Part shown: piece by piece, positions 4,431-52,667 of the stretch
How positions within the stretch are numbered: position 1 is the stretch's first letter
How the letters are laid out: each line of letters starts with the position of its first letter
Origin: Malacoraja senta
Taxonomy: Eukaryota
Direction of reading: 5' to 3'
DNA length: 64,000 bases
Assembly: GCA_038087875.1 (NCBI GenBank)
Contig: JAXLNO010002575.1
Location: 682,001-746,000 of the forward strand
Notes under the pieces: model-generated
Told to the model about the DNA's origin: nothing
Database searches by the model: none
Seen by the model: the letters and a program-made list of their open reading frames with translations, nothing else
Program-made: the position numbers and the translations under genes

Positions 4431-4433
4431 GCT

Positions 4434-15664: not shown

Positions 15665-15670
15665 TTTATT
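15665..15670 (-). terminator. Candidate polyadenylation signal AATAAA of the class I gene
   Basis: TTTATT on the + strand, 52 nt downstream of the putative stop codon. Confidence 0.45.
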
Positions 15671-15721
15671 TCAGTTCCTGCATTGTAATCACATCCATGA
15701 AATCTTCTACTCAGCGATTGG

Positions 15722-15762
15722 TTAGCAGTGCACGTTCTGCTTTGGTTGAACATTTTGATAAT
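15722..15762 (-). CDS. Probable terminal cytoplasmic exon, coding part (D)YQNVQPKQNVHC*
   Basis: Strong acceptor tttaatttccctcctcag|AT; phase matches the TM donor; short open frame with a membrane-proximal Tyr; AATAAA about 50 nt after the stop. It lies 11 kb from the TM exon, so the link is inferred. Confidence 0.65.
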
Positions 15763-17010
15763 CTGAGGAGGGAAATTAAATATTAGACAACAAAGAAATG
15801 GCATAGCAGAGAACAGAACTCAGAAAGATGCAACTAGTTTATTCACTTTAACTGTTGATTCATCCCACATAACATCTTCCTTCCAGATATAAAGGCACAG
15901 CGCCAGACACCTGGGTTTGATCCTGACCACGGGTGATGTCTGTACGGAATTTGTACCTTCTCCCTGTGACTGCATAGGTTTTCTCCAGGTGCTCCAGTTT
16001 CCTCCCACATTCCAAAGACAGATGTGCAGGTTTGTAGGTTAATTGACTTGTGTCCCTAGCTTATGTGGGTGATCGTTGGTTGGTGCAGACTCAGTGGGGC
16101 CGAAGAGTCTGTTTCAATGCTCTCTCTCTAAACTAAACAAAAAACTCAATACTCCTTCAAATAGTTTCGTTCACACAAGTTCTATGTTATCTAACTTTTG
16201 CTTCCACACTAGGGTCAAATAACAGAGACCAATTAACGCATAAAACCTGGCATCTTTAGTATGTGTGTGAAAACTGGAGGACAGTGGAAACCCATGCGGT
16301 CATAGGGAATACATGCAAACTTCACACAGCCGACAACCGAGGTTAGGATTGAACTGATGTGTATGATGCACTGAGGCAGCAGCTCTATCAGCAGCGCCAC
16401 TCTGCCTCAGGTTGCGTCATGTTCAGCACAAACGTTGTTGGACAAAGGACCTGTTCCTCTATTACAGGGGCATTCCCATTCACCGTAAAATTCAGCGAAC
16501 TTAGCACCATTGGGTCACTGGAAATATTTCCTGCCTGACCATCAGATCCCTCCAGATCAGTCGGACAGACACCAGTTAGGCAGCATCTGCCTGCAAATGA
16601 TTCATGTCCCTCAAACCCCTGCATCTCCATGCACCCACGAAGGTGCACCCCAGACGCCACCATCCCTGGCAGTGCTTTCCAGGCACACACCACATAGTAT
16701 GTAATAAAAACTTGCCCTTTTTAAAAAACTGCAGCTTCTACCCTGCACTGAATATAATGCAATCATTTAAATGCCATAGTAGGCATTTAGTTAATTGGGA
16801 TAATTTTAGTCAATTGGGAGGTGTGATTGCAAATCTTGTACAATATCATAAACCAAGTAAAATGTGACAAAGTCAAAATGGCCAGGCACAAAGAACAGAA
16901 TAATCATGAACATCAATAACATGTCAATAACTAGACTCTCCTTGTGGCAGCATGCTGTAAGGTTGCAAACTCGTTTGCTCCCTTAACTTTTAACTTCCAC
17001 TGACCACTCT

Positions 17011-17575
17011 TTCAATCAATCAATCAATCAACCTTTATTGTCATCTTGCAAGCAACAGTTGTACAGTGCAAAATGAAAAGACGTTTCCCAGGGAATACCG
17101 GAGCATCGCACATGAAATTTAAAACATTTCACACATAATAATACTAAAAACAATCCAGTCCCTGATGGAACAGTATAAATAGTTAAAAAGTAGGTAAAAC
17201 AACAACGTTAAAATACAGTAAAACCAATCATAAACATGTCCGGGGCAGCTGATTTGAGTGGCCAGTGCCAGTTATTGAAGTGACCAGTGCCAGTTATTAA
17301 AGTGTCTGTGCCAAGCCGCAGAATCAGGTGACTGTGAGTACAGAGTGGCTGTTTAGCAGCCTCACAGCATATGGCAGGAAGCTGTTTAGCAGTCTTGTAG
17401 TCCGGGCTTTGATGCTGCGATATCTCTTGCCTGATGGCAGGAGATCCAGGTGTATGTGGAGGGGGTGCAGTTTGTCCTTAGCAATTCTCTGAGCTTTTTT
17501 CAGGCAGCGGCTCTGGAACAGTTCTTGTTCCGAGGGTAGGGAGACGCCAATGATGCTCTCTGCTCCCCTCACTAC
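17011..17575 (-). mobile_element. Rex1/Babar-type LINE 3' fragment
   Basis: RCLKKAQRIAKDKLHP...LLPSGKRYRSIKARTTRLLNSFLPYAVRLLN; (ATTG)n tail. Confidence 0.8.
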
Positions 17576-17671
17576 CCTTTCAATGTTACTGGTGACTATT
17601 TGACTTCAAGACACCGTCTAACTGTTCATAAAGTGTTGATAACACTTTTACACGCCTTAATCGTGAAAAGG

Positions 17672-18280
17672 ATGGAGACAAGAAGGAAAGGAGGATCCCC
17701 AAAGAAGGAACTGGGGAAAGCCACAACCACAGCTCCAGCTTCTGATTCCAGCATCATAGAAGCAATATTGAAAATGAACGATGAATTGAAAAATGAGCTG
17801 AAAAATGAAATGAAAACAAGATTTGGCAGTTTGGAAGAAATGGTGAAAGGAGTTTCGACCAAATTGAAGGAAGTCCAAGGAGAACTGTCTTTGTTACAAG
17901 ATGAACTTCGTGAACAAAAGGATCAAATTGATATCTTGCGCACCCTGGGACAGGAGAGAGATTTGAAGATTGAAAAATTGGAACGGAGAACGAATGAAAA
18001 CACTCGAGCACTTCAGCAATACAAGTCTAAATATATGGACTTAGAAAACAGAAGCCGTGGTTTGAATTGACGAATTGTTGGTTTGCCGGAAGGCCAAGAA
18101 GGAAATAACATTATAAAATATGCTTCTAAAATGATAAAGGAAACATTCAACATTGAGCACAATGAAAACCTTCCGTTCCTGGATAAGGCACACAGGATTG
18201 GGAAGAAATCCGGTAATAAACCGAGACACTTGATCATTCGGTTTCATTTTTTTCAAATGAAGGAGAATATTCTCCAGGTT
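17672..18280 (+). pseudogene. L1 ORF1p (coiled coil plus RRM), in-frame stop at 18068-18070, C-terminal part missing
   Basis: DLENRSRGLN*RIVGLPEG and LDKAHRIG...KPRHLIIRF motifs. Confidence 0.85.
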
Positions 18281-18699
18281 TTTCTTGTTTTTCATATTTT
18301 GACCTTGAATAATAATAAGCAGCATTCCATGCCAGTCTGTATTTTTTTCTTCTTCTCTCTCAAAGAGATAATAACGAATGTGTTATGACGTAGTGGTTAA
18401 ATAATATTATTTTTATGCTGAGCACTGTTACTGGGAGAGATGGGATTGGGGAGGGGATTAGGTAGTTTGCTGACTGTCTTTTGGTCAGTTTGGGGTTCTA
18501 CAGGGGTGGGAGGGGGGAAGGGGGAGGGGTCTTTTGTTCCCTATTTAATGATCTCCATTTGTGCAAATTCTGAACTACAAAATTGGCTGAAATGTCGTCA
18601 CTTCTGGCTCCGCCCTAGATTTTTCTTCTTCCAATATTATGAACCTTTTAGGCTTCAAGAAATTAACCCATTACATCCCACATGATTTTTACAAGCAAT

Positions 18700-21600
18700 A
18701 TGGATAAAGTTACTAATTTCCTTTCATGCAATGTGAATGGCTTGAACCATCCCATTAAGAGGATTTCTTTTTAAAGTTCTTCACAGACTAAATGCTCAGA
18801 TTATCTTTGTTCAGGAAACTCATGTAAGGCAAGATGACAAGTCACGATTTTTGAGGTTTTGGAGAGGACAGCAGTTTCATTCAAATTCACAGGCTAAGGT
18901 GAAAGGAGTCTCTATTTTTATTGACTCCTCAATTCCGTTTGTTCACCATGAAACAATTTCTGATCCATATGGCAGATTCTTGGTGATTACCAGTGTCCTT
19001 TATAGGCAAAATGTCACTATGGTTAATGTCTATGCACCAAATATTGATCACCCTGAGTTTTTTAAACAGTTAATTGCATCCTTTCCCAATTTAAATGAAC
19101 ACTTTTTAATAATGGATGGAGACTTCAATTGCTGTTTGAATCCCTCGATTGATAGGTCTACATCTGATCATGTGCTTCCAAATAAATCAGCTAATTTTAT
19201 TAATTCTTTTTTACTTGACTCGGGAATGTTAGAAATTTGGAGATTCTTACACGCAAACGACAAAGAATTTTCATTTTTCTCTCATGTATATCATAGTTAT
19301 TCTAGGATCGACTATTTTATACTAGATTCTCGGCAAGTTCCATCGGTCATTGCATGTGAGTATGATGCAATTGCTATTTCTGATCATGCACCAGTGAAAC
19401 TATTGATCAAACTACCTGATTCCAAGTTTAGTGCTAAACAATGGCGATTTAATGCTACTTTGCTTCAAGACTTAAACTTTATTAAGTTTATGAAAGATCA
19501 GATTGCTTTTTACTTCTTGACAAACTCTAATGAAGAGATATCCAATGGTATAGTTTGGGATGCTTTTAAGGCATATATTCGTGGACAAATTATTTCATAC
19601 TCCGCGGGATAAAAAAAACAAACACAAAAAGAAATACGCACATTGGCTGACGAGATTAAAGAAATTGATAAAAAATATTCAAAACTCCTAGTTTAGAGCT
19701 CTATAAGAATAGAGTTGAACTTCAATTGAGATATGATTTGTTATACGTATCACCGATTGAGAACCAGTTACTTAAAACCAAAAGTCAATTTTATATAAAT
19801 GGCGAAAAATCTGGTAAATTACTTGCTAATCAATTGAGGCAGTGTCGGCCAAACGTCAGATTACTAAAGTGAGTAAACGGGATGGTACAGTAACTGTAGA
19901 CCATGACGAAATTAATAAATCCTTTCAGGAATTTTATACCTCCCTATCCCAATCAGATTTTCCTACTGATTCCAATATAATGCATGAGTTTTTAAAGAAA
20001 CTGAACTTACCAAATTTACCATACAATGAGTCTCTGTTGTTAGATGAACCCATCACGGAAGAAGAAATACAGAAAGCAATTTTTTCAATGAATTCTGGTA
20101 AAGCTCCCAGTTTAGATGGGTTTACAGTATAATTTTTAAAGTATTTCTCAAATTTATTGTCTCCATGGCTATGCAAGGTATTTAAAGATGCCTTTTTAAG
20201 GAATAGATTACCACAATCTTTTTATGAAGCTTCTATTTCTTTAATTTAAAAAAAGATAAAGCCCTTACTGAAGTGACATCATATAGACCTATATCAATGT
20301 GAAATGTAGATTTGAAAATTAGTTCCTAAATATTACCTATGAGATTGGAAAAGATTTTACCGCAAATTATCTCCGAAGATCAGACAGGTTTTATTAAAAA
20401 TCGTTACTCATTCTTTAATGTTAGGAGACTAATAAATATTGTATATACAGCGTCTAATAAAACCCCAGAATGTGTCATCTCACTTGATGCCGAGAAGGCT
20501 ATTGATAGAGTAGAATGGAATACGTATTCAATATACTTGAAAAAGTTAAGATTGGTCCAAAATTTATCTCTTGGATCAAACTGCTATATCTTATACCTCA
20601 GGCTTCTGTATTTACTAATAATCAGAGATCCCCTTTTTTCAGGCTCTTTCAAGGTACGAGACAGGGCTGTCCCTTAAGTGCTTTACTATTTGATATTGCT
20701 TTGGAAACTTTAGCCACTGCTATTAGGCAATCCCCTAATATTTTTGGTATTGTCCGCGGGAATAAGACACATAAGCTATCTCTTTATGCAGATGATCTGT
20801 TATTATTTATTTCTAACCCTGAGAAATCTATTCCGGCAATAGTAGCATTACTTAATCAATTCAGTAGTTTTTCTGGTTATAAACTAAATCTTAGTAAGAG
20901 TGAGCTTTCCCATTAAATAATTTTGTTTCAACGGAAGATGATCCAGAACTAAATGTGTTTCAAAAGAAATTAATGGACTATGGGTTAATAACTGGAAAAA
21001 AGCTAATTCTAAAATTTTGGAAGAAGGCTCCAATACCAACTATAAATATGTGGATTTCAAATATGTTTGAAACATTACACCTAGAAGAGATAAGACTCCT
21101 CCTAGCAGGTAAACCAGATCACTTCCACCTGACGTGGTCTGCATTTATAGAATTATTACAAACATAGGGTGCAAAAGTACTTTAAAAAAATAAAAAATTG
21201 AGGTCAGGTAAGGGGGGATGATAGTTGAAGAGTTGGTATGTCCTATTTACGTGATGCTCAAAAAAAAAACATTTGTTTCTCTTTTTTTCTCTTTCTCTTT
21301 TCTTTTCTTAGGGCCTATTTCTTAACTCTTTTTCTTTTTGTTTTTAATTTCGCTCTTATAGGGTCTTCGTCCTTTTTTGTTGTTACATTTTCTACACTTT
21401 TCTACACTTGCACTTTTTCCTTCACTTTCTTCTTTCTTTCAATCTTTTCCTTTTCTAGTGTAAAAAAATAAATAAAGGGAGTACATTAATTGTAAGAAGA
21501 TATAAATGACGAGTATTAATGTATGTGGTTGTAATGTAATGTACTTCTAATAAATAAAAATTAAAAAAAATAATAATAATAATAATAATAATAATAATTT

Positions 21601-23081
21601 TGTTTCGAGTTATGGACAGTTTCCATTTAGATTGACTACCGAAAGTTTTACTTATTTAGGTATTAAGATCACCAAGAAACACAAGGATTTATTTAAAGTT
21701 AATTTTATTCCTTTAATTGACCATATTAAACATCAGTTCAATAAATGGTCACCAATGTCCTTATCCTTAATTGGCCGAATCAATGCTATTAAAATGTTCA
21801 TTTAACCTAAATTTCTGTATTTATTTCAGACGATACCAATTTTTATTGCCAAATCTTTCTTTGATATTATAGACTCTAAAATTTCTTCATATATATGGCA
21901 GAATAAAAATCCCAGACTAGGTAAAAAATACCTACAGAAATCAAAAAAAGTTGGTGGTTTGGCATTGCCGAACCTTAGACTCTACTATTGGGCAATCAAT
22001 GTTCATTATTTAACATTTTGGACAAAAGATTTAGAAGATACCCAATGCTATAATTGGCTTCTATTCTAGGGACCTCGTTACCTTTTACAATTACGAGATT
22101 GAATAAATATATGACGAACCCAATAATAAGACATACGTTCCGAATACGGTTTCAATTTCATAAGTTCTTTGGACTATCTGATTTTATCCAAATTTCTCTT
22201 CCAACCATCTAGTACTGATCAAGTTTTTTTGTTATGGAAGAGGAAGGGATTAGTAGCTTTTCGTGATTTGTTTTTGGAGTGTTGTTTTATGTCTTTCGAA
22301 CAACTCTCCAATAAATATAACTTACCTAATTCACACTTTTTTAGATATTTACAAATTAGACAAAAGGAACTACCTCTTTTTCCGCTACCACATCAACCCG
22401 AAATTTTGGATTTTTTTTTACAGTTGAACCCTTATCAGAAAGGATTAATAACGACTATTCATGAGTTGATTTTAAAATTACAAATAGATACATTTGATAA
22501 AATTAATAATGACTGGGAAAGAGAACTCCAAATGTCTATCTATAGAGAAATGGGAGAGGATCCTTCAATTAGTTAATACCTCTTCAATGTGTGCAAGACA
22601 CACTTTAATACAATTCAAGGTGGTTCACAGAGCTCATATGTCAAAAGATAAGTTAGCTCGTTTTTATGGTCATATAAATCCTACCTGTGACATATGTATC
22701 TCTGAAGTGGCATCACTGACCCATATGTTTTGCTCCTGCCCTCTTTTGGAAAAATATTGGGAAGACATTTTTGATACTATTTCGGTAGTCTTATGTATAG
22801 ATTTACAACCTCGTCCTATTACTGCAATTTTGGGGTTACCAATGTTAGATTCTATTCATTTGTCCCTCTCCGCCCATCGGTTGATTGCTTTTACCACATT
22901 AATTGCCAGAAGATTTATTTTCATTAAATGGAAAGATTCCAACCCTCCGACCACACTCCAGTGGTATTCTGAAACGATATCATGTTTAAATTTAGAAAAA
23001 ATCAGAAGTGACATTGTTGAACCCTTGGTTAAATTTGATAAGACTTGGGGAAAATTTATTGAACACTTTCATACAACATAA
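18700..23081 (+). pseudogene. L1 ORF2p (endonuclease, RT, Cys-rich tail) with many stops/frameshifts
   Basis: NVNGLN, VNVYAPN, GDFN, SRIDYF, SDH; EDQTGFIKNR, SLDAEKA, QGTRQGCPLS, LYADDLL; CDIC..LTHMFCSC. Confidence 0.92.
20930..21592 (+). mobile_element. 5'-truncated L1 of a second subfamily inserted into ORF2
   Basis: Encodes an ORF2 C-terminus (KKLILKFWKK...LHLEEIR...TWSAFIELLQT*), 3' UTR and (TAA)n tail; flanked by AATAATTTTGTTTC at 20916-20929 and 21593-21606. Confidence 0.85.
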
Positions 23082-23179
23082 ATTGTTCCCTCTTTAACCT
23101 TTATAAACATTATTTTACCTTCTTAGGGTGGAATGGACTTGACGACAAACAGACTTAAATTGTTGAATTTCTCAGTTCA

Positions 23180-23322
23180 NNNNNNNNNNNNNNNNNNNNN
23201 NNNNNNNNNNNNNNNNNNNNNNNNNNNNNNNNNNNNNNNNNNNNNNNNNNNNNNNNNNNNNNNNNNNNNNNNNNNNNNNNNNNNNNNNNNNNNNNNNNNN
23301 NNNNNNNNNNNNNNNNNNNNNN
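23180..23322. other. Assembly gap (143 N)
   Basis: Run of N inside the L1 3' UTR. Confidence 1.
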
Positions 23323-25982
23323 TTACATTCATGTTTCCTTTTAAAGATTTAACTATATTAACATAGAGACCGAGAGGTCTATATTCAATATGTATTTTGA
23401 CACTGGTCTCATATTAGTTTATACCTGTTATTAATGTGTTTAATCCTGATCCCTATGTATCAATACCATTGTTATGTTTATCATTATTCTTTTTGGTCTG
23501 TTTTTTATGTTTTATTTTTGTTTTTGTTTTTTGGAAAAAAAACACTAAAAAGATTTTAAAAGAAAGGTACTGAATAAAAAAGTTGGGATGTTCTGCTACA
23601 GTTGTACAAGATGTTGGTGAGGCCACATTTGGAGTATTGTGTTAAGTTTTGGTCACTCCACTATCGGAAGGATGTCATTAACAGGGCCTGTGATTCAGGG
23701 AGAGGCAGAGAATGCTTGGACTTTAGTCCTTGGCACGCAAGAGGCTGAGGGGTGATCTTATAGAAGTTTATAAAATCAAGGAGCATAGATAGATTGAATG
23801 CACAGAATCTTTTAACCAGCCTTATGTAATCAAGAACCAGAGGACTTAGGTTTAAGGTGAGAAGGAAACGAGTTACTCGGAACCAGAGGAAGTGGAAATA
23901 TGGAAGAACATTCCAGGGGAAGTAGTTGAGGCAGGTATTAAAAAACATTTTAGAACACACTTGGACAGGTACATACTGTAGATAGGAACGGTTCAGTGAG
24001 ATATGGGTAGTTTAAACATGGCATCTTGGTTGGCATGGCCAAGTTGAGGCAAAGGGCCCATTTCCATGCCATAAGACTCTATGGCTCCGTGGGCTTGAAA
24101 AGCCGATTCTTTTCTGTTTCACTGCTAAATGATAGTTAATCACCCTCAGTAATAGTGACCACAATGGCAGACCCATGACCACGACTGGTTTAGTGATAAT
24201 AAGCTAACCATTGCCTCAGTTCAAATGTGCACGTTGTTGATGTTCAATGACTAAATTGTTGCTGCATTCTTAGTTTTGGCAAGGTGAGAAATGGCTTGGT
24301 TCTGATCTGGGTGCTGGAGCTGTTAGACATCTTGATACCATGAAAGCAGAACCTCCGTTTCAGGAAATATACTTGCTGAATGGTGTCTCAGACCAGCAAT
24401 GCCGGGGAACATTGTATTTTGAAGAGGAAATATTACACAACCAAGGCCAAGTGCTCGAGAAAGCTGCACGTCTGTTATTTCAATGAAAACTCTGCTCTTC
24501 ATCCATCTTGTCATTTTGATCACCCAGTTTATTTTATAATATTGTACAACATTTGCAATCAATTCTCAGTTTGTGACATTTACAGCTGGCGTGAAGATGC
24601 ATCAGTCAATACCTTCTGTCCTCCAATTTAGTTTATTTAATAGAAAGATTGAAACATAAAAAAACAGGTGCAGGAATAGGCTATTAGGCCCTTTGAGCCA
24701 GCACCGGCTGATCATCCAAAATTAATACTCCGATCTGGCTTTTTCCCCATATCCCTTGACTCCCTTAGCCCTAAGAGCTAAATCTAACTCTCTCTTGAAA
24801 ACAGTGATACAGTGTGTAAACAGGCCATTTGTGCCACCAAATCCATACTGACCAGCAATCACCCTTTCATAATAGATTTCCCATCCACCCCTACACTATC
24901 AGGGTGACTTACCGAGGATGATTACCTGCACACCTGCTCATCTTTGGGATATGGGAGGAAACCGGAGCTCCCTGAGGAAGCCCACATAGTCACAAGAGAA
25001 TGTGCAAACTCCACGTAGAGAGTACCCGAGGTCCAGATTGAACCTGGGTCTCTGGCGTTGTGAGACAGCAGTTCTACCAGCTGCACTACCATGCTGCATT
25101 ACATACAAACTCTAAATCCTACACTGACTTTCCCTTCCACTTGTTATATTCAACACAATAACTCCTTTACACAGGAGGAAAGTGAACTGCAATTCATCAC
25201 CAGAATATATCTTACAACAGTGTGATCACAGGCAAGAAACCAATGATATAGATGACTGAATTTACACTAAAACCCTGATCATCCAGCTCTCTTGGGATTT
25301 GGGAAATGGTAGATTTTAAGGACTGCTGCATGTTACTCCAAACATACTTTAATTCAACTAATTGAAGCACTTGTTGAGCAAGTCAGTGGTTGAGGTGCAT
25401 CTGTACACTACTATCAGACTTAAGCGGAGGAATACCCATTGTAATTTGCCTGAAGAGTCTCGAACCAGATTGTCACCTATCCATGGTCTCCAGGGATGTT
25501 GCCTGACCTGCTGAGTTACTATAGCACTGTCCCTCACAGTCTTTCCCAATCTTATAAATCAAAAATAGTCAGCATCTTTCTACATCATAAAGAGTCATGG
25601 AAATATGCAGCATACAAACATGGCCTTTGTCCCACTAACCTGCACCAACCATTCATGTACACTAATCCTACATTTGTCCCACATTCTCATCAGCTCTCCC
25701 CACATTGTATCATGTACAATCTAGGGGACAACTAACCTACCAAACCATGTTTTGGGGATGTGGGAGGAAACCAGAGCACCTGGGGAAACCCACAGGAACA
25801 ACATGCAAACTCTACAGATACAACAGCCGATGTCGGTATTTAATTCAGGTCTCTGGCTCTGTGCTGTCCTGTTTCACATTGTAGTCCACCTGTCATGTTG
25901 TTGCTCATTCATTCGGCTTTCCACCTTGAACCATTTCTCCCACTACTCACATTCCCACTTAATTTGGAGTTTTCCAGCAACA

Positions 25983-26937: not shown

Positions 26938-27045
26938 CTCTCCTCTTTTTTCTCCACCAAACAATTACTGCCAAGACAATAGCCAGCAATATCAGCACAC
27001 ACGCGGCAATAAGGCCTATGTGCCTGTCTTTCTTGCTATTTCCTT
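26938..27045 (-). CDS. MHC class I connecting peptide/transmembrane exon (108 bp)
   Basis: tttttcag|AA acceptor, G|GTAAGA donor, phase 1-1. (E)GNSKKDRH-IGLIAACVLILLAIVLAVIVWW-RKKRR: hydrophobic helix followed by a basic stop-transfer cluster. Confidence 0.9.
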
Positions 27046-30761: not shown

Positions 30762-30836
30762 GATGTAGTCACAATGATTAAAATGGAAACAACAGAAGAT
30801 AATGATTATCTATGAAAGAATATTTAACGTTCTTAC

Positions 30837-31103
30837 CCCAGATGATGGTCTTCCCACCGGGCAGGCTGCTGTGATCGACATGACAGGAATACTGTTTCCA
30901 ATCATATGGATCATACTCAAGGACAGACCTTAGATGATATGTTCCATCGTTGTTGGGTACGACCCCAGAAGATTTGGTCTCAGAGACATGTTGACCATTC
31001 TGCAACCAGCTGACTTTGATGGCCGGTGGGTAAAATCCAGACACAGTGCAGTACAGGACTGAATGATCATCAGGGCGGGCAGCGAGAGTGACCTCAGGGG
31101 AAA
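30837..31103 (-). CDS. MHC class I alpha3 (Ig C1-set) exon (267 bp)
   Basis: tcttgtag|TT acceptor, G|GTAAGA donor. VSPEVTLAARPDDHSVLYCTVSGFYPPAIKVSWLQNGQHVSETKSSGVVPNNDGTYHLRSVLEYDPYDWKQYSCHVDHSSLPGGKTIIW shows the C..FYP..W..PNxDGTY..YxCxVxHxSL pattern. Confidence 0.97.
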
Positions 31104-37500: not shown

Positions 37501-38212
37501 ATGATATGCACATGCTTCTAATAACAATATTTTTTTTTAAACAAACAAATAGTGAAAGGCTTGGATAGATGTGGATGTGGAGAGGATGTCTCCAATGGTG
37601 GGAGAGTCTACGACGAGAGGTCATAGTCTCAATATTAAAGGACATTCCTTTAGGAAAGAGATGAGGAGGAATTTATTTTGTCAGTGGGTGGTGATTCTGT
37701 GGAATTATTTGCCACAGAAGGCTGTGGAGTCCGTCAATGGATATTTTTAATTCTTGATTAGTATGCACATCAGGGGTTATGGGGAAAAGGCAGGAGAATG
37801 GGGTTAGGAGGGAGAGATAGATCAGCCATGATTGACGGGCGAAGTCGACTTGATGGGCCGAATGTTCTAATGCTGCAGCCATTACTTATGACCTTATGAC
37901 TCAATTGGCTTCCTCCATGTGCTCCAGTTTTGTCCCATATACCAAAGACGTGCCAGTGAGTTAGTTGGACATTGCAAATTATCCGTCGTGGAGCTGAATG
38001 TAAGGAGAATCCGAGGGAGCTGAGTGCAAGTTGTGAGAGAGAGCAGTGGAACGGTTTGTCGACATTGCATAGAAAACTAGCATAGAATCAATGGGCCGAA
38101 TGACCTTTCCCTCTGTCATGATTGGGTCAGAGATAATATGACTCATTGCCTCAGAGTGAAATATTACTCATTGCCTACCATCACAAAACAACATCCTTTG
38201 TTCTGAACTCAC

Positions 38213-38486
38213 CTTTTCTGGTCATGTATGTCTTTCCAATTGCATAGTATGTAAGCCATAGATCCACAGTCATGTTCTAACAAGCTCTTGAAATAACGGT
38301 TCATTTTTTCATTCTTGTCCCATTTCTCTTTGAAGGGCTCAGCTATTGGATCATGCACCGTCCACTTTAGTTTGTCCTTATCAAAACTAAATGCATATCT
38401 TCCATCAAAAGCCAACTTCAATATCCCTACAGTGGGACTGTGATCGTCTACCTCACAACCAAACTGTCCTTGAACGTAGTGATAAT
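38213..38486 (-). CDS. MHC class I alpha2 domain exon (274 bp; frameshift after Cys164)
   Basis: atttcag|AT acceptor, AG|GTGAGT donor. YHYVQGQFGCE...AFDGR...KW...KEKWD...LLEHDC contains C101, C164 and DG119-120. The last 18 codons read VDLWLTYYAIGKTYMTRK only if 2 nt are restored. Confidence 0.95.
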
Positions 38487-38699
38487 CTGAAATAAAAATA
38501 AAAATCATTATTTGATTAATTGTTATGACTGGGTAATTTCTGAACACCAGGGTGCAAGTTATTTATATATGTCACAAGTAGCAAGGGTCACAGCATAGAT
38601 CCCTGTGACAACTCTACTTGTCACTGAACTACAGCCTGAATATTTGGCCTTCCGTACAACTGTAGAGACCATATTATTGTATGGGTGTGATGCATGGAC

Positions 38700-39100
38700 T
38701 CTCACTCCAGCACTGTCCTAGTCTCTTGATGGTACCTACACCCGAATGCTCGGAAAAGTTTAAAATGTCAGATGGAGGGACCACATCACCAACGCCCAGC
38801 TCTATGGGGAGAATCCACCTCTGACCGAGAAGATCACGTTGAGAAGGATGAGGCTCGCAGGTCACTGGCTCCGTTACCCAGAAATGCCAGCGAACAAGGT
38901 TGTGCTGTGGGAACCCACCCATGGAAGACTTGACCCAGGACGGCCAATCAAGATGATGGTGAAGACGTTGATGGAAGACGCATGTGTAGAGATAAAAAAG
39001 GCGCTTGCCAGTTGCATGAAGGAGAGATGTGTGGTGCATCCGTCACCGTGCCCGTCGGAAACCAGCACGGCACTAATGTTTTCAATGATTATTATTATCA
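38700..39100 (+). mobile_element. RTE-clade LINE 3' fragment
   Basis: RRMRLAGHWLR...NKVVLWEPTHG...GRP; (ATT)n-like end at about 39087-39100. Confidence 0.65.
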
Positions 39101-40830: not shown

Positions 40831-41050
40831 CATGAAACCTTGAAAAAGATGTGGGATTTTCTGTAATCCGACTCACTAAAGCCACTTTGTGGCCTTTATT
40901 AGCCCCTTTAGTTTTAAGCTTTAGAGCAGTTGTTCTTAATCTTTTTGGCCCCACGACCCCATCGGGCATTCTTGATCAGTACCATGACCTCTGAAACAAA
41001 ATTTGAAAAAAAACAGCCCGATTTATTAAAACATGTCAGCCAATGCTCAG

Positions 41051-42830
41051 TCAATGGGATGGCTGAAATTGCTTCGCAGTCATCAGGCAATCAAAACATG
41101 GATGAATGCTCGACAGGCAGCATCTCATGTCAGTGTCGATCACAAGCCTATTGCGTACCTTCGTTTTCAGAGTTACCATAGTGGAGAATCCACCCTCACA
41201 GTGAGAGGTTGAGGGGGACTGGACCAATAGGGTCAGGGCCCTCTTCGAAAGAGCAGGACAGTCCTTCACTTTCAGCCAAAATGTGGCGAGCTCTTGTTCC
41301 ATGAAGTCACTCTTGAGCTGCGCATCTTCACAAATTCGGTAAAATTCAACCTTCGCTGTCACATCAGTATCACTGATGCCACCGCCTTCAACGGAAAAGG
41401 GTCGGAAGATCCACTGATCACGAGAGCGGTCGTCCAGTCTGGGGAAGTAACATTCGATGGCTTCACTAATTGCCAGAAGGTGGGTTGAGATCTCCTCATG
41501 GAAGTGGCATTCAGCATCAGGCGTAGCATCGAGGAGAGTCGTCATCTCAGGGAAGATAGTTGAGTCACCGTCCTGGACTCTTCTCTGGTAAAGATTCCTC
41601 CTGAATGCTGCCACTTTGCCATTGGGAGGTTTCCTTGAAGTGACAGGTTCAAGGAATTCACCTCAGCGAAGAAGTCAGCCAAGTAAGCAACCTTCATCAC
41701 GAACAGTTCAACCTGCATCTTTTCATGAAGCTGATTCTCCTTCTCAGTACCCCTTCTCTCCAAGAACAGCGCTATTTCCTCTCAACGTTGAATCACATGA
41801 TTGAGAAATTTACCAGTGCGAAAGCCAGCGCACCTCTGTGTGGAATAACAGAATAGTGAAATCGGCGCCCATTTCTTCACACATCGCTTTGAAGATTCTT
41901 GAGTTTGTTGCACTCTCTCGGATGTGGTTCACAATCTTCACCACATCTGAAAGCACTTCTCGAAGACCAAGAGGGAGAGTCTTCATCACTAAAGCATGGT
42001 GATGTATCATGCAGTGGGTGAAGGAGACATGGGGAGCGACATCCTTCACGAAGGCTTGGAAACCGGATCTGCAGCTGACCATGGAAGGTGCCCCAACTGT
42101 ACACATCCCGACAAGGCATTCCCACCAAGCTCATGTTTGATGAGGAAGGCTTCCAGCATTCTGAACACATCTTCTCCCCGAGTGGTAGTAGCCAATGGGT
42201 CCGAGAACAGGTACTCCTCCGCATGGCTTCTCCATTGAGGTAATGAACGTAGACTAGCAGTTGGGAACATGAGGCAACATCTGTTGGCTCTCCCAGTTGC
42301 AGTGAATACACTGGACTGCTCGTCACAGCCCTCACTACTTGTAGCAGAATATCATTACTCATATCCGAGATTCAACTTTTGACTGTGTCATTCAAAAGGG
42401 AAATCTGCCTGAACTTGTTTGACTGCTCTTCCCCCAGCACCAACTTCGCTGTTTCGAGAAGGCGTGGCTTGATAAGCTCTTCACCGATGCTGTGAGGTTT
42501 CTTAGTCTGTGCGATTCGATAAGCAATCCGGTATGAAGCCTCCAACGCTGCTTCATTTTGATGAGCACAGTTACCCATTGAATAGATGTGGGATCCCTTG
42601 AGTACGGCTTCTTTTCGTTTGAAATAGTCCCCGCTCTTCCCCGCCAGGTTACTGTGACAAGACTCCAAATGGATCTTCAGTTTGCTGGGCTTCATGCTCT
42701 CGTGACTCAAAACCTTGGCACAGAGAACACATCGCGGCTTGACCACGGATTTTGAACAATGCTTGTGAAGCCCAACTTGAGAAATGTTTCACTATACGTG
42801 CGCGTCTTGGAAGACATGGTTCACAACACA
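41051..42830 (-). pseudogene. hAT transposase, frameshifted
   Basis: KPRCVLCAKVLSHESMKPSKLKIHL (BED-like), SIGEELIKP, THCMIHHHAL, LFHTEVRWLS, AYLADFFAEVNSLNLSLQG, CEGGFSTMVTLKTKVRNRL. Confidence 0.92.
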
Positions 42831-44556: not shown

Positions 44557-44805
44557 GCTGGCTCCTAGTGCTCCCCCCCTCCCTCCTACAGGGAAGACCC
44601 ATCAATAGTGATGACTCTGCTGGGTCCTAGTGCTCTCCCCCCTCCTTCTCCTACAGGGAAGATCCATCAGTAGTGATGACTCTGCTGGGTCCTAGTGCTC
44701 TCCCCCCTCCTTGTCCTACAGGGAAGATCCATCAGTAGTGATGACTCTGTTGGGTCCTAGTGCTCTCCCTCCTCCTACAGGGAAGACCCATGAGTAGTGA
44801 TGGTT
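44557..44805 (+). repeat. Minisatellite, 4 units of 62-65 bp
   Basis: Unit CCTAGTGCTCTCCCCCCTCCTTCTCCTACAGGGAAGATCCATCAGTAGTGATGACTCTGCTGGGT starts at 44564, 44626, 44691 and 44756. Confidence 0.92.
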
Positions 44806-45826
44806 CTTCCCCTTCCCCCTCTTTTAATCAGGTTACCCCGACCACACACCCGCCAGTTAAAATTCCCTGCTATATTATGGATCACAATTTCTACGAATTA
44901 CGATATATAAAACTCTGATGGCACAAAATGTGAATGCTAGTCTTCACAAAATATATGCAAACATTTTCTGAGATTTCACGAAATTCCCACCCCCCCTCCT
45001 TCAGCTCCCGGGCTCCTATTGGACTCTGGGCCCGGGTACGATGTACCCCCTGCACCCCCCTCTCATAGGCCCTGTGTATACGTACGCGCATTCGTGAACA
45101 AAATACTGTGTGTGGTATGTACCTTTGTTAGGTTCCTCAAAATAGGCTCAACAAATTGATGTTCTTTACAACCCCTTCATGACCCCCGGAAAACCCCCAA
45201 ATGACCCCCATGGGGGTCATGACCCCCAGGTTAAGAACCACTGCTTTGGAGATACATTGCTGAAACAGGCCCTTCAGCCCATACTAGGGACAATTTACAA
45301 TTATACCAAGCCAATTTACCTGCATCTCAGAGAAAAGCCACACAGGTTACGGGGAGAACATGCAAACTCCGTACAGTCACCACTCGTAGTCAGGTTCAAA
45401 CCCGGGTCTCAGGTGCTGCAAGGCAGCAACTCGTGTAAGGCCACGATCTCTTGGCTTTGCTTTTAGTTATTATCATGTTTTATCTTCTATTGTGTTCTTT
45501 TTGCTTATTGCATATAAACAAATGTAAAGCTGCACATAAGGTTGGATCTTTTCGAGGCCCGAGCTGACCCATCTTTTACCACAAAAGTGCTTCCTATATT
45601 TAGAGAAACATAGATATAATAAGGCTCACCCCTCATGGGCATTGAAGGCTTTCTCTAAAATATGGAGACCATTAAGCTGTTCACTGCCAAGTTTATTTTT
45701 CACTATTGGCCATGATCCTTAGTGTACTCGGCGGTGGCATTGAACAGGTTAAAGATATCCAGTGATTGAACAGGTTAAAGATATCCAGTGATGTGTAGCT
45801 GCGCTACCCTTCCTTGGTATTTTTAA

Positions 45827-46503
45827 GGGCCTGTCCCACTTACGTGTCCTTGGCACACAAATTATGCGACCTCGTGGTCGCGTTGAGGCTCACGGGCATC
45901 GTATGGCCGCGCGGGACCGGTCTCACTGAGAAGCGCGGAGGGGTATGTAGTTGTGCGCGACATCGCGCGGGGCTCCAATAATTTTGTAGTGAACGAAATC
46001 TTCGCGCGCCAACGGCCTGTCGCGGAACTGACGGCCAAAGTGGGACAGGCCCAAGACCCTGGCGCGACGCAAAGTCTCACTTTCAACAGGAGCAGAAGCA
46101 GGCAGACGATCGCCGAACTCGGCCTGGGGCTCACGGCCGTTGCGGTCCAGATCCGCCCCCACTTCTACTCCCAGAGCGGGGCCAAGAAAATTGAAGATAC
46201 ACGAAATGCAGGAGTAACTCAGCGGGACCGGCAGCATCTCTGGAGAGAAGCAATGGGTGATGTTTCGGGTCAAGACCCTTCTTTTCAGACTGAAGAAGAG
46301 TCTCGACATGAAACGTCATCTATTCCTTCTCTCCAGAGATGCTGCCGATCCCGCTGAGTTACTCCAGCTTTGTGTCCATCTTCAAATGACGTCACGCGCT
46401 CCAGACGGCTGTACGTACGCATGTAATCGCGCCCGACCTTCGCCGGACCATCGTGGCTCAACGCGTAATATGCGTGCCAAGGACACGCAAGTGGGACAGG
46501 CCC
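45827..46503. mobile_element. CpG-rich MITE with 30-bp TIRs (Harbinger- or Kolobok-like; superfamily unresolved)
   Basis: GGGCCTGTCCCACTTACGTGTCCTTGGCAC at 45827-45856 vs its inverse at 46474-46503 (29/30); flanks TTAA and CTTTA. Confidence 0.8.
46288..46319 (+). ncRNA. Minimal hammerhead-like motif in a palindromic terminal-repeat dimer
   Basis: CTGAAGA-AGAGTCTCGACAT-GAAA-C-GTC; core and ACGTC intact, stem II weakened. Confidence 0.45.
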
Positions 46504-46962
46504 CTTTACTTAGATGATTCATTCCCTCTGGCATTGATTGATGAATCAAAGTGGGGGGGGGGGGTGATGGAATTTGTAAGGATTTGCTGAAGTCAGTTTG
46601 CTTAAACTGTGAACTTTAGCCCAGACAAAGAACAGTTTGTGAACTCAAGGTTATAACTGATAAAAACCTAGGCACAACTGTGAAAAACAACCCTTTATTA
46701 GGATGAAGGTAATGAGCTAATGCCAACCATTCCCCTGGGACCAGGATTAACAAGGAAGGGTCAAAACTTGGATGATGTTTTCATTCCAATAAGAAACTCT
46801 ACAAACAATGATAGCTGAATAAAACATACTTATGTTGTATAGATGAAGAGCCTCCTTTTCAAGCTGCTTTCTGCAGTCTTTTAGTTGTTCTGCAGATCCT
46901 TTACATTCTCTCGTTTTCGTGTTTTCAAGAAACACCACAATTAGCCGAATGTATACTAATTA

Positions 46963-48890
46963 TAGAAACATAGAAAAATAGGCACAGGAGTAGGCCATTC
47001 GGCCATTTGAGCCAGCACCGCCATTCAATATGATCATGCCTGCATCTAGAATCAGTAACCCATTCCTGCTTTTAGAAACATAGAAACACAGAATATAGTT
47101 GCAGGAGAAGGCCATTCGGCCCTTCGAGCCAGCACCGCCATTCAATATGATCATGGCTGATCATCCAACTCAGTATCCTGTACCTGCCTTCTCTCCATAA
47201 CCCCTGATCCCTTTAGCCACAAGGGCCACATCTAACTCCCTCTTAAGTATAGCCAATGAACGGGCCTCAACTACATTCCGTGGCAGAGAATTCCAGAGAT
47301 TCACCACTCTCTGTGTAAAAAATGTTTTTCTCATCTCAGTCCTAAAAGATTTCCCCTTTATCCTTAAACTGTGACCCCTTGTTCTGGACTTCCCCAAAAT
47401 CGGGAACAATGTTCCTGCATCTAGCCTGTCCAACCCCTTAAGAATTTTGTAAGTTTCTATAAGATCCCCCCTCAATCTTCTAAATTCTAGCGAGTACAAG
47501 CCGAGTCTATCCAGTCTTTCTTCATATGAAAGTCCTGACATCCCAGAAATCAGTCTGGTGAACCTTCTCTGTACTCCCTCTATGGCAAGAATGTCCTTCC
47601 TCAGATTAGGAGACCAAAACAGTAGGCAATACTCCAGGTGTGGTCTCACCAAGACCCTGAACAACTGCAGTAGAACCTCCCTGCTCCTCAAATCCTTTTG
47701 CTATGAATGCTAACATACCATTCGCTTTCTTCACTGCCTGCTGCACCTGCATGCCTACTTTCAATGACTGGTGTACCATGACACCCAGGTCTCGTTGCAT
47801 CTCCCGTTTTCCTAATCGGCCACCATTCAGGTAATAGTCTACTTTCCTGTTCTTGCCACCAAAGTGGATAACCACACATTTATCCACATTATACTGCATC
47901 TGCCATGCATTTGCCCACTCACCCAGGCTATCCAAGTCACCTTGCAGCCTCCTAGTACCCTCCTCACAGCTAACACTGCCCCCCAGCTTCGTGTCATCCG
48001 CAAACTTGGAGATGTTGCATTCAATTCCCTCGTCCAAATCATTAATATATATTGTAAATAGCTGGGGTCCCAGCACTGAGCCTTGCGGTACCCCACTAGT
48101 CACTGCCTGCTATTCTGAACCCGATTACTCCTACTCTTTGCTTCCTGTCTGCCAGCCAGTTCTCTATCCACATCAATACTGAACCCCCAATACCGTGTGC
48201 TTTAAGTTTGTATATTAATCTCTTATGTGGGACCTTGTCGAAAGTCTTCTGAAAGTCCAGATATAACACATCCACTGGTTCTCCCTTATCCACTCTACTA
48301 GTTACATCCTCGAAATTTTTTATAAGATTCGTCAGACATGATTTACCTTTCATAAATCCATGCTGACTTTGTCCAATGATTTCACCATTTTCCTAATGTG
48401 CTGCTATCCCATCTTTAATAACTGACTCTAGCAGTTTCCCCACTACCGATGTTAGACTAACTGGTCTGTAATTCCCCGTTTTCTCTCTCCCTCCCTTTTT
48501 AAAAAGTGGGGTTACATTAGGTACCCTCCAATCCTCAGGAACTACTCCAGAATCTAAAGAGTTTTGAAAAATTATCACTAATGCATCCACTATTTCTGGG
48601 GCTACTTCCTTAAGTACTCTGGGATGCAGCCTATCTGGCCCTGGGGATTTATCGGCCTTTAATCCATTCAATTTACCTAACACCACTTCCCGGCTAACTT
48701 GGATTTCACTCAGTTCCTCCATCTCATTTGAGCCCCGGTCCCCTGCTATTTTCGGCAGTTAATTAAGTCTTCCTTAGTGAAGACAGAACCAAAGTAGTTA
48801 TTCAATTGGTCTGCCATGTCCTTGTTCCCCATGATCAATTCACCTGTTTCTGACTGCAAGGGACCTACATTTGTTTTAACTAATCTTTTC
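46963..48890 (-). mobile_element. CR1 LINE, 5'-truncated young copy with duplicated 3' end
   Basis: RT motifs YLDFQKTFDKVPH, GVPQGSVLGP, KFADDTK, RPHLEYC, VNLWNSLP; (TTTCTATG)-type 8-bp tail repeats at 46963 and 47073. Confidence 0.93.
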
Positions 48891-49779
48891 CCCCATATCC
48901 CTTGATTCCTTTAGCCTTAAGAGCTAAATCTAACTCTCTCTTGAAAGTACGTTGTTTAGATAAGAGCCTTCTTTTCAAGCTTCTTTCTGCGGTCTTTTAG
49001 TTGTGTTTTGCAGGTGCTTTAGTTTGTCTCGTCTTCTCTCTGCTGAATATGTAACAACTACAAGCTGTGAATAACAAAAAATCCTTGAAAACTAACACTG
49101 GACTGCGAGTGTGAGTACAAAGCATGTTCTAATGTGACCCAACTTCAGTCTGAAGTAGGATCCTCACGCGAAATATCTGCCTTCCCATGTTCTCCAAAGA
49201 TGCCACTTGACCCGTTGAGTTCCTTAGCACTTTGTGTGTGGAGGAAAGCAGCCTCTGCTCTTCCTTTCATCTACAATTGTTAAATAGTTCAATCCAGACA
49301 ATTACTTCAATTTTACACTGTTGACTAAAATGAGAAAGAAGACAGTTCAAGGATAAATAACTGCCCATCAATCCATGTGACAGAGAAAGAGGCCTTTCAG
49401 CCTCCTGAGCCCACTCTAGCCCAGAGAACAAAACCATTCCACCACTAATTTTCCCCAAAACGGATCTTCCTCATTTCTATCAATGCCACAAATCCACCTA
49501 TTTGCAGCAGTGGCTTAATCTACTAAATCAGCACATTTTGGTATGTGGGAGGAAACTGGAGAACAAACATTGTCACAGGGAGAATGCTTATACTCCACAC
49601 AGACTGCACTGGAGATGATTGAACACGGATCACAGGAGCTATGAGGCAGCAGCGCTCTTTGCTATAAAGCAGTCATAGAGAGTCACACAGCAGGGAAACA
49701 AGCCTTTTGGCCCAACTTGTCCAAGCTAATCATGATACCCCATTTAAGCTAGTCCCATTTACCCTGCAATGGGTAGACA

Positions 49780-50280
49780 TCATTCAAAACGTTTCTCTCT
49801 AGATGTCAGCTGCTCTACATCGGTGAGACCAAGCGCAGGCTTGGCGATCGTTTCGCTGAACGCCTCCGCTCGGTTCGCAACAACCAACCTGATCTCCCGG
49901 TGGATCAGCACTTCAACTCCCCCCTCCCATTCCAAATCCGACCTTTCTGCCCTCGGTCTCCTCCATGGCCAGAGTGACGACCACCGTAAATTGGAGGAGC
50001 AGCACCTCATATTTCGCTTGGGCAGTTTACACCCCAGCGGTATGAACATTGACTTCTTTAATTTCAGGTAGTCCTTACTTTCTCCTCCCCATCTCAGCTC
50101 TCCCTCAGCCCACTGGCTCCACCTTTCCCTTTCTTTTTCCTGCGTCCCCCCCCCTCCCCCTCCCCCCCCACCCTCACATCAGTCTGAAGAAGGATTTTCG
50201 GCCCGAAACGTTGCCCATTTCCTTCGCTCCATAGATGCTGCCTCACCCGCTGAGTTTCTCCAGCACTTTTATCTACCTAT
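49780..50280 (+). mobile_element. Penelope-like element 3' part (GIY-YIG C-terminus plus terminal repeat)
   Basis: LYIGETKRRLGDRFAE...RKLEEQHLIFRLGSLHPSGMNIDFFNFR*, then a hammerhead-like motif at 50184. Confidence 0.9.
50182..50214 (+). ncRNA. Minimal hammerhead-like motif directly downstream of the Penelope ORF
   Basis: GT-CTGAAGA-AGGATTTTCGGCCC-GAAA-C-GTT-GC; ACGT palindrome kept, stem II partly mutated. Confidence 0.5.
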
Positions 50281-52406
50281 GCATGCCCCTGTCCATGTGT
50301 CTATTAAATATTGTTATTGTACCTGCCGCAACTCCATTCTCTGGCAGGTCATTCCATATGCTGACCACTCTCTGAGCACAAAGATTGTCCCAAGTTCCAA
50401 TTAAATCTTTCCCCTCTCACATTAAACCCATGTCCTCTGGTTATTTTATTCCCCTTCTCTGGGTAAAAGGCTCTGGGCATACACTCTATCAATTCCCCTC
50501 ATGATTTTAAGCACCCCTATATGATCACCCCTCAGCCTCCTGTGCTCCATGGAATAAAGCCCTGGCTTGCCCAATCTCTCCCTCTTGTTCACACCCTTGA
50601 GCCCCGACAATATGCTCATAAATCTCATAAACATAACAATGTTGCAGATAATATGTGCACCATAAATAATGCAAATAAAAAAACGTATTTTTGAAGGCAA
50701 TATGATTCAATAAACATGGTTCAATGAATCAGATGATAATGTAATAAACGGCATTCACATGTATTCACATATAATTTGAAAATAATAATAAATATTGCAA
50801 GATGTGGAAAATTGATAGAAATTATGCCCAGTGCATAATATTTTGATGTATTGTTCCCTGTTAGTACCCTCACCCTGTTTTAGTCCAGTTAAAGATTAAT
50901 AATATAATTTGTTTAATGTGTAACCGAAGAGGTAACAAAAAGCAATGTTTTCAGAAATAATTAATCATGAATGAATGATACTTTATAGTGACATGTGACA
51001 AGTCACAGTGAAATTCTTTGTTTTGTAAACCCAACGTATGTAAAGATTCTTCACATAAAGGGCACCGACAAAGTTATAAAGTCTCCCACACCAGGTCCTC
51101 CTTTGTCCCCCACCTCACGATGGTTCCCCCACGTCTAGTCCTGCTTTGTTCAATGGTACACTACGAATTTCATTGAATTAACACAGTAATGGTGATAGGA
51201 CTTATTGATTTACAATATAAAACATGTCCAATTCCAACTTATATGGATATACAAGTGTGGTGCAGACGGATTTGGACAGCTTACTTTACAATTGGTGCCC
51301 AAGATAATTTAGAGATATAGCACGAAAACAGCCCTTAGAGTCCACAGTGACCAGTGATCCCCTTTGGCATACAGGCTTGGAGTGTGGGAGGAAACCGGGG
51401 CACCCGGGGAAATCCCACGCAGGTCACGGGGAGTACGTACAAACTCTGTACAGACAGCACCTGAGGCCAGGATCAACCCTGGGTCTCTGGCACTACGGCA
51501 GCATCACTACGGCTGAACCACAATGGCATTTAGGTTATCCTTTAAATATTTCACACAACTTTTCATTCAAAATTTGTCAATAAAAGTAAAAACAATTGGT
51601 GAGGTACGCAAGGGATTTTAACCATTCAAAAAGCCACCAACATTTCAATGATTTGTAAAATGCTGGAACACACAGCAAGTTCAACAGAACCTATGGAAAG
51701 AGAAACAAAATTAATGCTTCAGAATTGTGAGAATGTGTAAGTTACAGACAGGAGTGGGAGGCATGGTTGGACATAGCGGGTATCACTAATAAGGTAATGA
51801 CAGGTTTCCATGGTGATAAACTGACAATGAAGCCATCAGACAACGGCATTTTTGGTTTTTATTTCACATTTGCAGCATCTGCAGTTCTTAGGTTAGTGAC
51901 TTAGCATGGAAACGGGCCATTCTGCCCACCAATTCCATGCCAACCATCGATCATCTTTCACACTAGTTCTATGTTATCCCAAAATGGACACAAAATGCTG
52001 GAGTAAGTCAGGGGGAACACTCTGTCTGAGGAAGGGTCTTGACCTGAAAAGTCATCCATTCCTTGTATCCAGAGATGCTGCCTGTCCCGCTGAGTTACTC
52101 CAGCACATTGTGCCTATCTTTGCTGTAAACCAGCACCTTCAGTTCCTTCCTACACATGTATGTAATCCCACTTTCTCACCCATTCTCAGCACACAAGAGT
52201 AATTTACAGAGCCCAATTAACCTACAAACTCTCACGTTTTCAAGATATGGGACGAAACCGGAGCACCTGGAGGAAATATCTGTGGTCACAGGGAGAACGT
52301 GTAGTCAGGATCAAACCTGGGTCTCTGGCACAGCGAGAAATTTCTTTGAGGTGTTTTTTTATGAACATTGATCACACTCCAAATGTATAGAAATGAATGA
52401 ACTAAC

Positions 52407-52667
52407 TTGCTGTTTCGTTCTGCCTCCGCATCCATTCATCGACTTGCCCTTTGATGATTCCATGGAAACCAGTTTCAGAGACCGTATTTGTTACCCAGTA
52501 ATTCCTGTCAAATGCAGCCGCCATCCATTTCTGTCTTGGAACTGTAATTACCATGTTTTTGTCATAATACTGTATCTCACAAACGTCCAGTACACCCACG
52601 ACACTATATTCTGGTAGATGAGTACTCCCGTGGTTCAGGGTGTAGTAATAGATCAGTGTGTGAGGCC
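52407..52667 (-). CDS. MHC class I alpha1 domain exon (261 bp)
   Basis: tgtgtctag|GG acceptor, A|GTTAGT donor. Translates GPHTLIYYYTLNHGSTHLPEYSVVGVLDVCEIQYYDKNMVITVPRQKWMAAAFDRNYWVTNTVSETGFHGIIKGQVDEWMRRQNETA, with H3, Y7, T10, G26, D29, PR..W, YW and the N86 glycosylation sequon (NET). Confidence 0.95.

Follow-up and report, generated by a model that had tools for sequence, protein, structure and literature searches.

In this study, we analyzed a 64,000-nucleotide stretch of DNA from the skate Malacoraja senta (NCBI GenBank assembly GCA_038087875.1, contig JAXLNO010002575.1, positions 682,001 to 746,000 of the forward strand), hereafter called the window and numbered from its first letter. 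The minus strand of the window carries a major histocompatibility complex (MHC) class I gene of the UGA type in five exons (alpha1, alpha2, alpha3, transmembrane and tail). UGA is an old non-classical class I lineage of low copy number in sharks and rays. We read the gene as the orthologous UGA copy of a third skate species, in the state of a recent null allele or a very young pseudogene, and give this reading a probability of roughly 0.6. As judged from its lineage, an intact UGA molecule would pair with beta2-microglobulin, would cycle through endosomes by means of a tyrosine motif in its tail, and would show a lipid-like ligand in a CD1-like manner to a receptor of T or natural killer (NK) type. 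In the window copy, a slippage deletion of two nucleotides (TGTGTG to TGTG) after Cys164 would shift the reading frame, and the resulting stop 7 nt into alpha3 would lead to nonsense-mediated decay or to a secreted stub. Since everything else is intact and the ratio of non-synonymous to synonymous change (dN/dS) on the window branch (~0.4) is that of intact orthologs, the loss would be recent. The parts of the gene are listed here in the direction of transcription.

52407..52667, minus strand: alpha1 exon, 261 nt, phase 1 in and out, with splice sites.
38213..38486, minus strand: alpha2 exon, 274 nt here and 276 nt in orthologs (the Amblyraja exon has 276 nt).
38264..38266, minus strand: frameshift site, with one TG of a TGTGTG run missing, so that a single G (38265) remains of the ortholog codon GTG (Val165).
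30837..31103, minus strand: alpha3 exon, immunoglobulin (Ig) C1-set, 267 nt, entered out of frame as assembled, with a stop after 3 codons.
26938..27045, minus strand: exon for the connecting peptide, transmembrane segment and basic anchor, 108 nt, matched by tblastn to residues 293-328 of Amblyraja protein P0154 and by complementary DNA (cDNA) at 92.7%.
15722..15762, minus strand: last coding exon (tail), encoding D-Y-Q-N-V-Q-P-K-Q-N-V-H-C and then a stop (TAA).
15749-15760, minus strand: Y-Q-N-V tail motif, within the last coding exon.
14963..15721, minus strand: 3' untranslated region (UTR), as far as it is matched by blastn of little skate cDNA (Logan contig L002; 15764-15482 and 15483-14963).

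Six-frame reading of the window gave three long stop-free class I-like stretches on the minus strand. The class I heavy-chain plan is complete, with an alpha1/alpha2 platform, an Ig C1-set alpha3 domain, a transmembrane segment and a short tail, each in its own exon. All acceptors are AG, all donors are GT, and all junctions are in phase 1, which is a general trait of class I genes; the exception is the 274-nt alpha2 exon, which puts the frame off by two. Pfam matched MHC_I in alpha2 (1e-10) and C1-set in alpha3 (1.1e-20), and alpha1 had no Pfam match but was matched by class I chains of the PDB. Alpha1 holds Y7, Y59, the GFHGIIKGQ helix signature, W81, R84 and an N-E-T sequon at the N86 position, so that the class I glycosylation site is kept, while C101, F143, K146, W147, L159 and C164 lie in alpha2. 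Both domain disulfides are present: Cys101-Cys164, which are C98 and C161 in the gene's own numbering, and LYC..YSC in alpha3. When placed on the window by blastn, the little skate transcript L002 joins the transmembrane exon directly to the tail exon, and it stops without a poly(A) tail.

These results bear out the original prediction of a five-exon class I heavy chain. The prediction had spliced the exons after restoring 2 nt, which agrees with an alpha2 exon of 274 instead of 276 nt, but as assembled the gene is broken and truncated 7 nt into alpha3. A companion note had set the fault at Cys164, and frame reading puts it at the same place. The end of the gene had been given as 15665 and has to be moved, as the 3' UTR matching the skate transcript runs to ~14963. 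No leader exon was found in the window by tblastn and blastn with the skate leader. In Amblyraja the leader exon lies 31.8 kb upstream of alpha1, and the upstream end of the window still aligns within that long first intron, which explains why the leader is not in the window. A second class I gene was considered and rejected, because tblastn with UGA and UGA-sister proteins matched only the exons above. Searches with tblastn and Pfam showed no other host genes in the window, only transposon open reading frames (ORFs).

The best PDB match of each extracellular domain was 9ch4_A (alpha1, 1.7e-36; alpha2, 7.8e-29; alpha3, 1.9e-32), at a level far above what chance would give. The next matches for alpha1 and alpha2, which included MR1 and nurse shark UAA, were at ~1e-9 to 1e-10. 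PDB entry 9CH4, released on 2026-03-18, is titled "Crystal structure of shark nonclassical MHC CLASS I, UGA". In folding and structure searches, the intact Amblyraja ortholog stood in for the window protein. By sequence, this ortholog matched 9CH4 at E 8.6e-118. The AlphaFold2 model of its ectodomain (predicted local distance difference test score, 91.9) also ranked 9CH4 first in the PDB, with Z 26.0 and 58% identity, and all other structures were at ~22. An exhaustive HMMER search with alpha1 gave three close cluster representatives (86, 63 and 62% identity), which were automatically named proteins of Leucoraja erinacea, Amblyraja radiata and Pristiophorus japonicus; the next were at 45% or less. 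Further orthologs, found by a word-indexed search, come from Rhinoraja, Pristis, Mobula, Hemitrygon, Heptranchias, Heterodontus, Stegostoma, Scyliorhinus, Cetorhinus and Mustelus. A conceptual window protein was built with X at the broken codon. Its identity was 90.8% to Amblyraja radiata XP_032898133, 89.8% to Rhinoraja, 87.6% to Leucoraja, with values of 58-71% for the other rays and sharks; alpha1 alone was 91% identical to Amblyraja P0154.

A maximum-likelihood tree was calculated for 61 class I proteins, a set without CD1 sequences and without the authors' own reference UGA set. UGA formed a clade of 18 sequences with 100/100 support and a split between sharks and batoids, and the window sequence was nested among the skates at 100/100. 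Classical UAA, marked by Triakis scyllium O46840, was a separate clade, and the window fell in another clade with 96-100% support, as expected from the non-classical status claimed in the original prediction. The window was also collinear with the Amblyraja and Leucoraja loci through introns and flanks at ~89% identity. A paralog rather than an ortholog was rejected by this collinearity with both skate loci. The gene is the same UGA locus in a third skate species. It belongs to an already named and structurally solved lineage (9CH4), and the apt annotation label is UGA (possible pseudogene), not 'F10 alpha chain-like'. UGA-type genes have been placed in an MHC-linked class Ib cluster of elasmobranchs (PMC10751288; linkage also PMC12562908).

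The window copy shares with shark and ray UGA the best match in all three extracellular domains, the 100/100 clade and the low copy number. The common signature of the lineage consists of F or L at 143, L159, L167, GFHG-I/L-IKGQ, N-x-YFK-S/N-LLE and a short Y-x-x-I/V tail. The copy differs from shark UGA in overall identity (~58-60%), in R84 where sharks have K, Q or E, and in its truncating 2-nt deletion. The skate orthologs (Amblyraja XP_032898133, Leucoraja erinacea XP_055521885 and the Rhinoraja longicauda protein), automatically named 'F10 alpha chain-like', have the same exon structure and 88-91% protein identity. In contrast to the window copy, they are intact, with a 276-nt alpha2 exon, and Leucoraja has full-length spliced transcripts; the window has in addition an extra long interspersed nuclear element (LINE) in its last intron.

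The frame of alpha2 is lost at a single point. Up to the TGT of Cys164 (38268-38266), the exon reads ...KSLLEHDC; a lone G (38265) follows, and then GAT CTA TGG. Translation in the other frame gives DLWLTYYAIGKTYMTRK from 38264 onward and leaves the exon in phase 1, to be continued by the V-SPEV of alpha3. The local context is ACTGTGGATC in the window and ACTGTGTGGATC in relatives, one unit of the (TG)3 run being missing, and skate orthologs have C-V-D-L/Y-W at the broken codon. As assembled, the product has 181 residues, and the frame ends at a stop 7 nt into alpha3, which leaves 368 nt to the last exon junction. A stop so far ahead of the last exon junction is a textbook target of nonsense-mediated decay. 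The frameshifted messenger RNA is therefore expected to be decayed, or else to give a secreted 181-residue stub without alpha3 or transmembrane segment. Splice sites that could rescue the frame were sought among other donors near 38213 and at a second AG in alpha3, and none keeps both exons in frame. No further stop or defect was seen elsewhere in the gene, whose five exons are open and have canonical splice sites.

For comparison, four sequencing runs from three related organisms (A, B and C) were aligned to positions 37800-38720. Their contigs were 95-98% like the window and appear from their sequence to behave like DNA of close relatives; since the pieces pass from exon into intron, they say nothing on splicing or expression. 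All four runs had CA put in behind 38264 on the plus strand, which is TG on the gene strand, and Val165 was thus intact in organisms A, B and C. The contigs of organism C span the whole alpha2 exon with no further exonic indel. Organism A, which is ~98% like the window, has a separate 2-nt deletion at 38335 (window 38335-38336) in the same exon, within the GAG-CCC-TTC codons for E-P-F. This deletion was the only form in sample S1 and made up about one quarter of the local depth in sample S2, where the pattern looks like a heterozygous bubble. Set on the window's background, it gives a stop inside alpha2. By these comparisons, the window deletion is derived and unique among all sequences compared, and the frameshift of organism A in the same exon is independent of it. 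The frameshift of organism A would mean that loss-of-function alleles of UGA are tolerated in close relatives.

The window branch carries 14 synonymous and 22 non-synonymous changes (omega ~0.41), and the intact Leucoraja gene carries 7 and 12 (~0.45). As no other defect was seen and dN/dS is like that of intact orthologs, the break must have happened very recently, if it is real at all. We consider a real deletion about twice as probable as an assembly slip, because the loss looks like natural slippage outside a homopolymer, the other differences of the window from relatives look like ordinary divergence, and null alleles evidently circulate in the group.

The groove was examined in an alignment of the window protein with Triakis UAA, three further classical-type sequences and 15 UGA sequences. 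Six of the nine residues that hold peptide termini are kept (Y7, Y59, R84, K146, W147 and Y171), and three are replaced by hydrophobic ones (F143, L159 and L167); further groove residues of the window are F70, W81, G97, F99, L114 and L116. The replacements belong to the whole lineage: F, L or M stands at position 143, and L at 159 and 167 has few exceptions. Conservation of K146 and W147 is nearly complete across UGA. R84 occurs in skates only, and other UGA sequences have Q, K or E there. We also compared 40 standard groove positions, taken from HLA-A2 contacts and mapped by anchor motifs. The window has 20 hydrophobic residues at these positions and a mean hydropathy of +0.39, and UGA overall has 18-24 with means of +0.1 to +0.9, against 15-18 with means of -0.2 to -0.4 in the four classical sequences. 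All 40 residues are those of the intact Amblyraja ortholog. Compared with classical UAA (Triakis O46840; nurse shark 6LUP), the window protein has the same fold, domain lengths, disulfides and glycosylation site and the same six terminus residues. It differs in its ~30% identity and separate clade, in the replacement of T143, Y159 and W167, and in a less polar groove.

All residue calls of the original prediction (Y7, Y59, R84, K146, W147 and Y171; T143F, Y159L and W167L; G97, F99, L114, L116, F70 and W81) were confirmed by alignment with Triakis UAA and 20 other sequences. Positions 143, 159 and 167 are indeed replaced (F, L, L) relative to classical Triakis UAA and not conserved. The proposed partial remodelling of both groove ends agrees with six kept and three hydrophobic terminus residues, and the more hydrophobic groove with 20 of 40 positions against 15-18 of 40. 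R84 was called correctly, but it is a skate state and not a feature of the lineage. The phrase "half-conserved, more hydrophobic groove" is fair, but it describes UGA generally and no peculiarity of the window gene. Of the ligand, predicted to be restricted or hydrophobic, the hydrophobic option fits what a 2025 review reports for the UGA lineage (PMC12562908). There, a personal communication on unpublished crystal structures and mass spectrometry suggests that UGA binds lipids like those of human CD1d.

The tail of UGA is conserved as well. In 13 of the 15 UGA orthologs listed, Y-x-x-I/V stands directly after the basic anchor, and the other two are gene models without the tail exon. The motif is D-Y-Q-N-V in the window, DYQNI in skates, and YNAV or YNTV in sharks. 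The same layout is found in the tyrosine-based endosomal sorting signal of CD1 tails, and CD1b has YQNI. By this analogy, the Y-x-x-I/V tail would support endosomal cycling. Tetrapod CD1 resembles UGA further in being class I-like, in its hydrophobic groove with reported lipid binding, and in having a short tail with a tyrosine motif right after the basic anchor; UGA differs in keeping K146, W147, Y7 and Y59. Chicken CD1-1 gave Z 22.2 against the model of the UGA ortholog, level with MR1 and classical chains. The orthology of such genes to CD1 has been described as hard to assess (PMC10751288), and CD1 orthology of UGA was not supported by sequence ranking.

Two further lineages are close to UGA. 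The UGA-sister gene (Leucoraja XP_055486430) adjoins UGA on a Leucoraja scaffold and is the nearest other lineage in the tree, with 40% identity. The lineage of PDB entry 8GM8, which is probably UFA, is next nearest in the tree and has a lower identity to UGA than 40%. Both share L159 and a greasy groove with UGA. Cetorhinus protein P0079 matches 8GM8 at 4.3e-90 and ends in a tail-less hydrophobic segment, not in a transmembrane segment followed by Y-x-x-I/V.

Several points weigh against a null allele or young pseudogene of a lipid-presenting lineage. None of the four runs, all 95-98% alike, matched the window haplotype. As the deletion was never seen in independent reads of the sequenced animal, a short dinucleotide run may have been wrongly assembled or called in the consensus. 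No RNA-labelled run holding the exon was found for this species, and the integrity of the 5' end (leader exon and promoter) lies beyond the window. In sequence ranking, MR1 and classical class I stand above CD1, which is not among the best matches of UGA. Lipid binding by UGA rests on the personal communication in the review and on the PDB title.

The strongest alternative, with a substantial though clearly smaller share of the probability, is that the skate UGA gene is functional, that its TG was lost in assembly or consensus calling, and that a heavy chain of the full-length 340-residue class is made. The open exons, canonical splice sites, cysteines, glycosylation site and tail motif, all intact, would be expected of such a gene, as would groove residues identical to those of intact Amblyraja at all 40 positions and a branch dN/dS no higher than in intact orthologs. 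The TG is present in all relatives, and at least one estimated-length gap nearby shows that the assembly is not flawless. However, the site is not a homopolymer, and the loss of one unit from a three-unit dinucleotide run is typical of natural slippage. What else separates the window from its nearest relative resembles ordinary divergence, and the alpha2 exon of one close relative carries a frameshift of its own. We therefore favor the recent null allele or very young pseudogene.

A second alternative concerns the ligand of intact UGA, which may present restricted peptides, or lipopeptides in the way of chicken YF1*7.1, through Y7, Y59, K146, W147 and Y171, rather than free lipids. The six terminus residues kept in skates and the nearly lineage-wide K146 and W147 fit this proposal. 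The nearest non-UGA structures by sequence and fold are MR1 and classical class I, not CD1, and chicken YF1*7.1 with acylated glycine gave Z 22.3. On the other hand, position 84 varies (R, Q, K, E) and 143, 159 and 167 are hydrophobic, so that neither clamp on the peptide ends is complete. Endosomal loading would agree with the conserved Y-x-x-I/V tail, and the crystal and mass-spectrometry evidence cited in the review points to CD1d-like lipids (PMC12562908). We consider peptide or lipopeptide presentation rather improbable and keep a lipid-like ligand as the favored one.

UDA reportedly keeps eight of the nine invariant residues, and UEA and UCA are said to be restricted to sharks. The window gene keeps six of nine, belongs to a lineage present in batoids and lies far from UAA. 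The original prediction had left room for UBA or an undescribed lineage, and this has become very improbable: database names are automatic ones only ('F10 alpha chain-like', 'MR1-like') and no primary paper on UGA, 9CH4, 8GM8, UFA or CD1 in cartilaginous fish was found in the literature searched, but the title of 9CH4 names UGA, the ortholog is 58% identical to that structure at Z 26, the clade has 100/100 support, and UBA is derived from UAA (PMC12562908), to which the window gene is ~30% identical and in another clade. The gene is UGA, neither UBA nor undescribed.

The LINE in the last UGA intron is specific to the window.

16924..23563, plus strand: window-specific insertion of ~6.6 kb in the last UGA intron, with LINE endonuclease and reverse-transcriptase ORFs (Pfam Exo_endo_phos, RVT_1).

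On the plus strand, the endonuclease ORF spans 18746-19609 and the reverse transcriptase (RT) ORF 20509-20913. The flanks are collinear with the Amblyraja locus (L001), window 24598-23564 corresponding to 85500-86554 and window 16923-16539 to 86587-86959, and the place of the ~6.6 kb insertion is taken by only 33 nt in Amblyraja (L001 86554/86587). An assembly gap at 23180-23322 lies inside this insertion, near the 3' end of the LINE, in the intron between the transmembrane and tail exons. Because the gap sits in an intronic retrotransposon and cDNA joins the transmembrane exon directly to the tail exon, it touches neither coding continuity nor frame.

Other mobile elements were also observed. 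A block resembling a long terminal repeat retrotransposon at 2400-7400 on the plus strand holds a gag with a SCAN-type domain (3092-3967) and a D-T-G protease-like segment (3971-4438), with an integrase (4365-6176) ahead of RT and RNase H (6152-7390). This order of integrase before RT is unusual and has been described for Gmr1/Gmr30-type Gypsy elements, the proposed source of the vertebrate SCAN domain. Two copies of a repeat family lie on the minus strand at 55780-56560 and 47070-48900; their open ORFs (226 and 176 aa) resemble an RT tail and have no Pfam match. In the UGA loci of Amblyraja and Leucoraja, three to four places match the family at 91-96%, and these matches point to a young skate retroelement that looks active. 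In UGA intron 1, between alpha1 and alpha2, two adjacent open frames of 164 and 138 aa without a Pfam match were found at 41880-42790 on the minus strand; from their C-x-x-C...H motifs, they look like a domesticated element of transposase or zinc-finger type.

Some database models of UGA exons extend beyond the gene. Leucoraja RefSeq XP_055486429 (P0157; JAMYXN010000384.1, L003) continues past the alpha3 donor with intronic sequence (GKNVKYSFIDNHYLLLFPF), as its scaffold does not reach the transmembrane exon. The window encodes the same 19 intron-derived residues after alpha3. In several RefSeq isoforms of Leucoraja LOC129716032 (P0001, P0152-P0155 and P0169), UGA exons are joined to the adjacent gene of a GPR139-like receptor. 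These fusions are probably read-through artefacts of the gene models, and they have grouped a G protein-coupled receptor with UGA proteins in a 90% cluster.

The overall picture of the UGA lineage is unchanged by this copy, and the recurrence of frameshift alleles in close skates is the only mildly new point. The copy adds that conservation of the hydrophobic residue at 143, of L159 and L167 and of the Y-x-x-I/V tail reaches from skates to catsharks, and that R84 is a skate peculiarity outside the design of the lineage. UGA and UFA are candidates to date CD1-type lipid presentation to the origin of jawed vertebrates, and each ortholog therefore helps to define the truly constrained residues of groove and tail. 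Frameshift alleles of UGA in at least two closely related skates hint that the gene is dispensable or decaying there. Two independent 2-nt frameshifts in one exon (38265 in the window and 38335 in organism A) raise the thought that this skate and its closest relatives are losing UGA, which we think doubtful at present. If the loss is true, these skates would be natural knockouts for the need of a 400-million-year-old lipid-presenting molecule.

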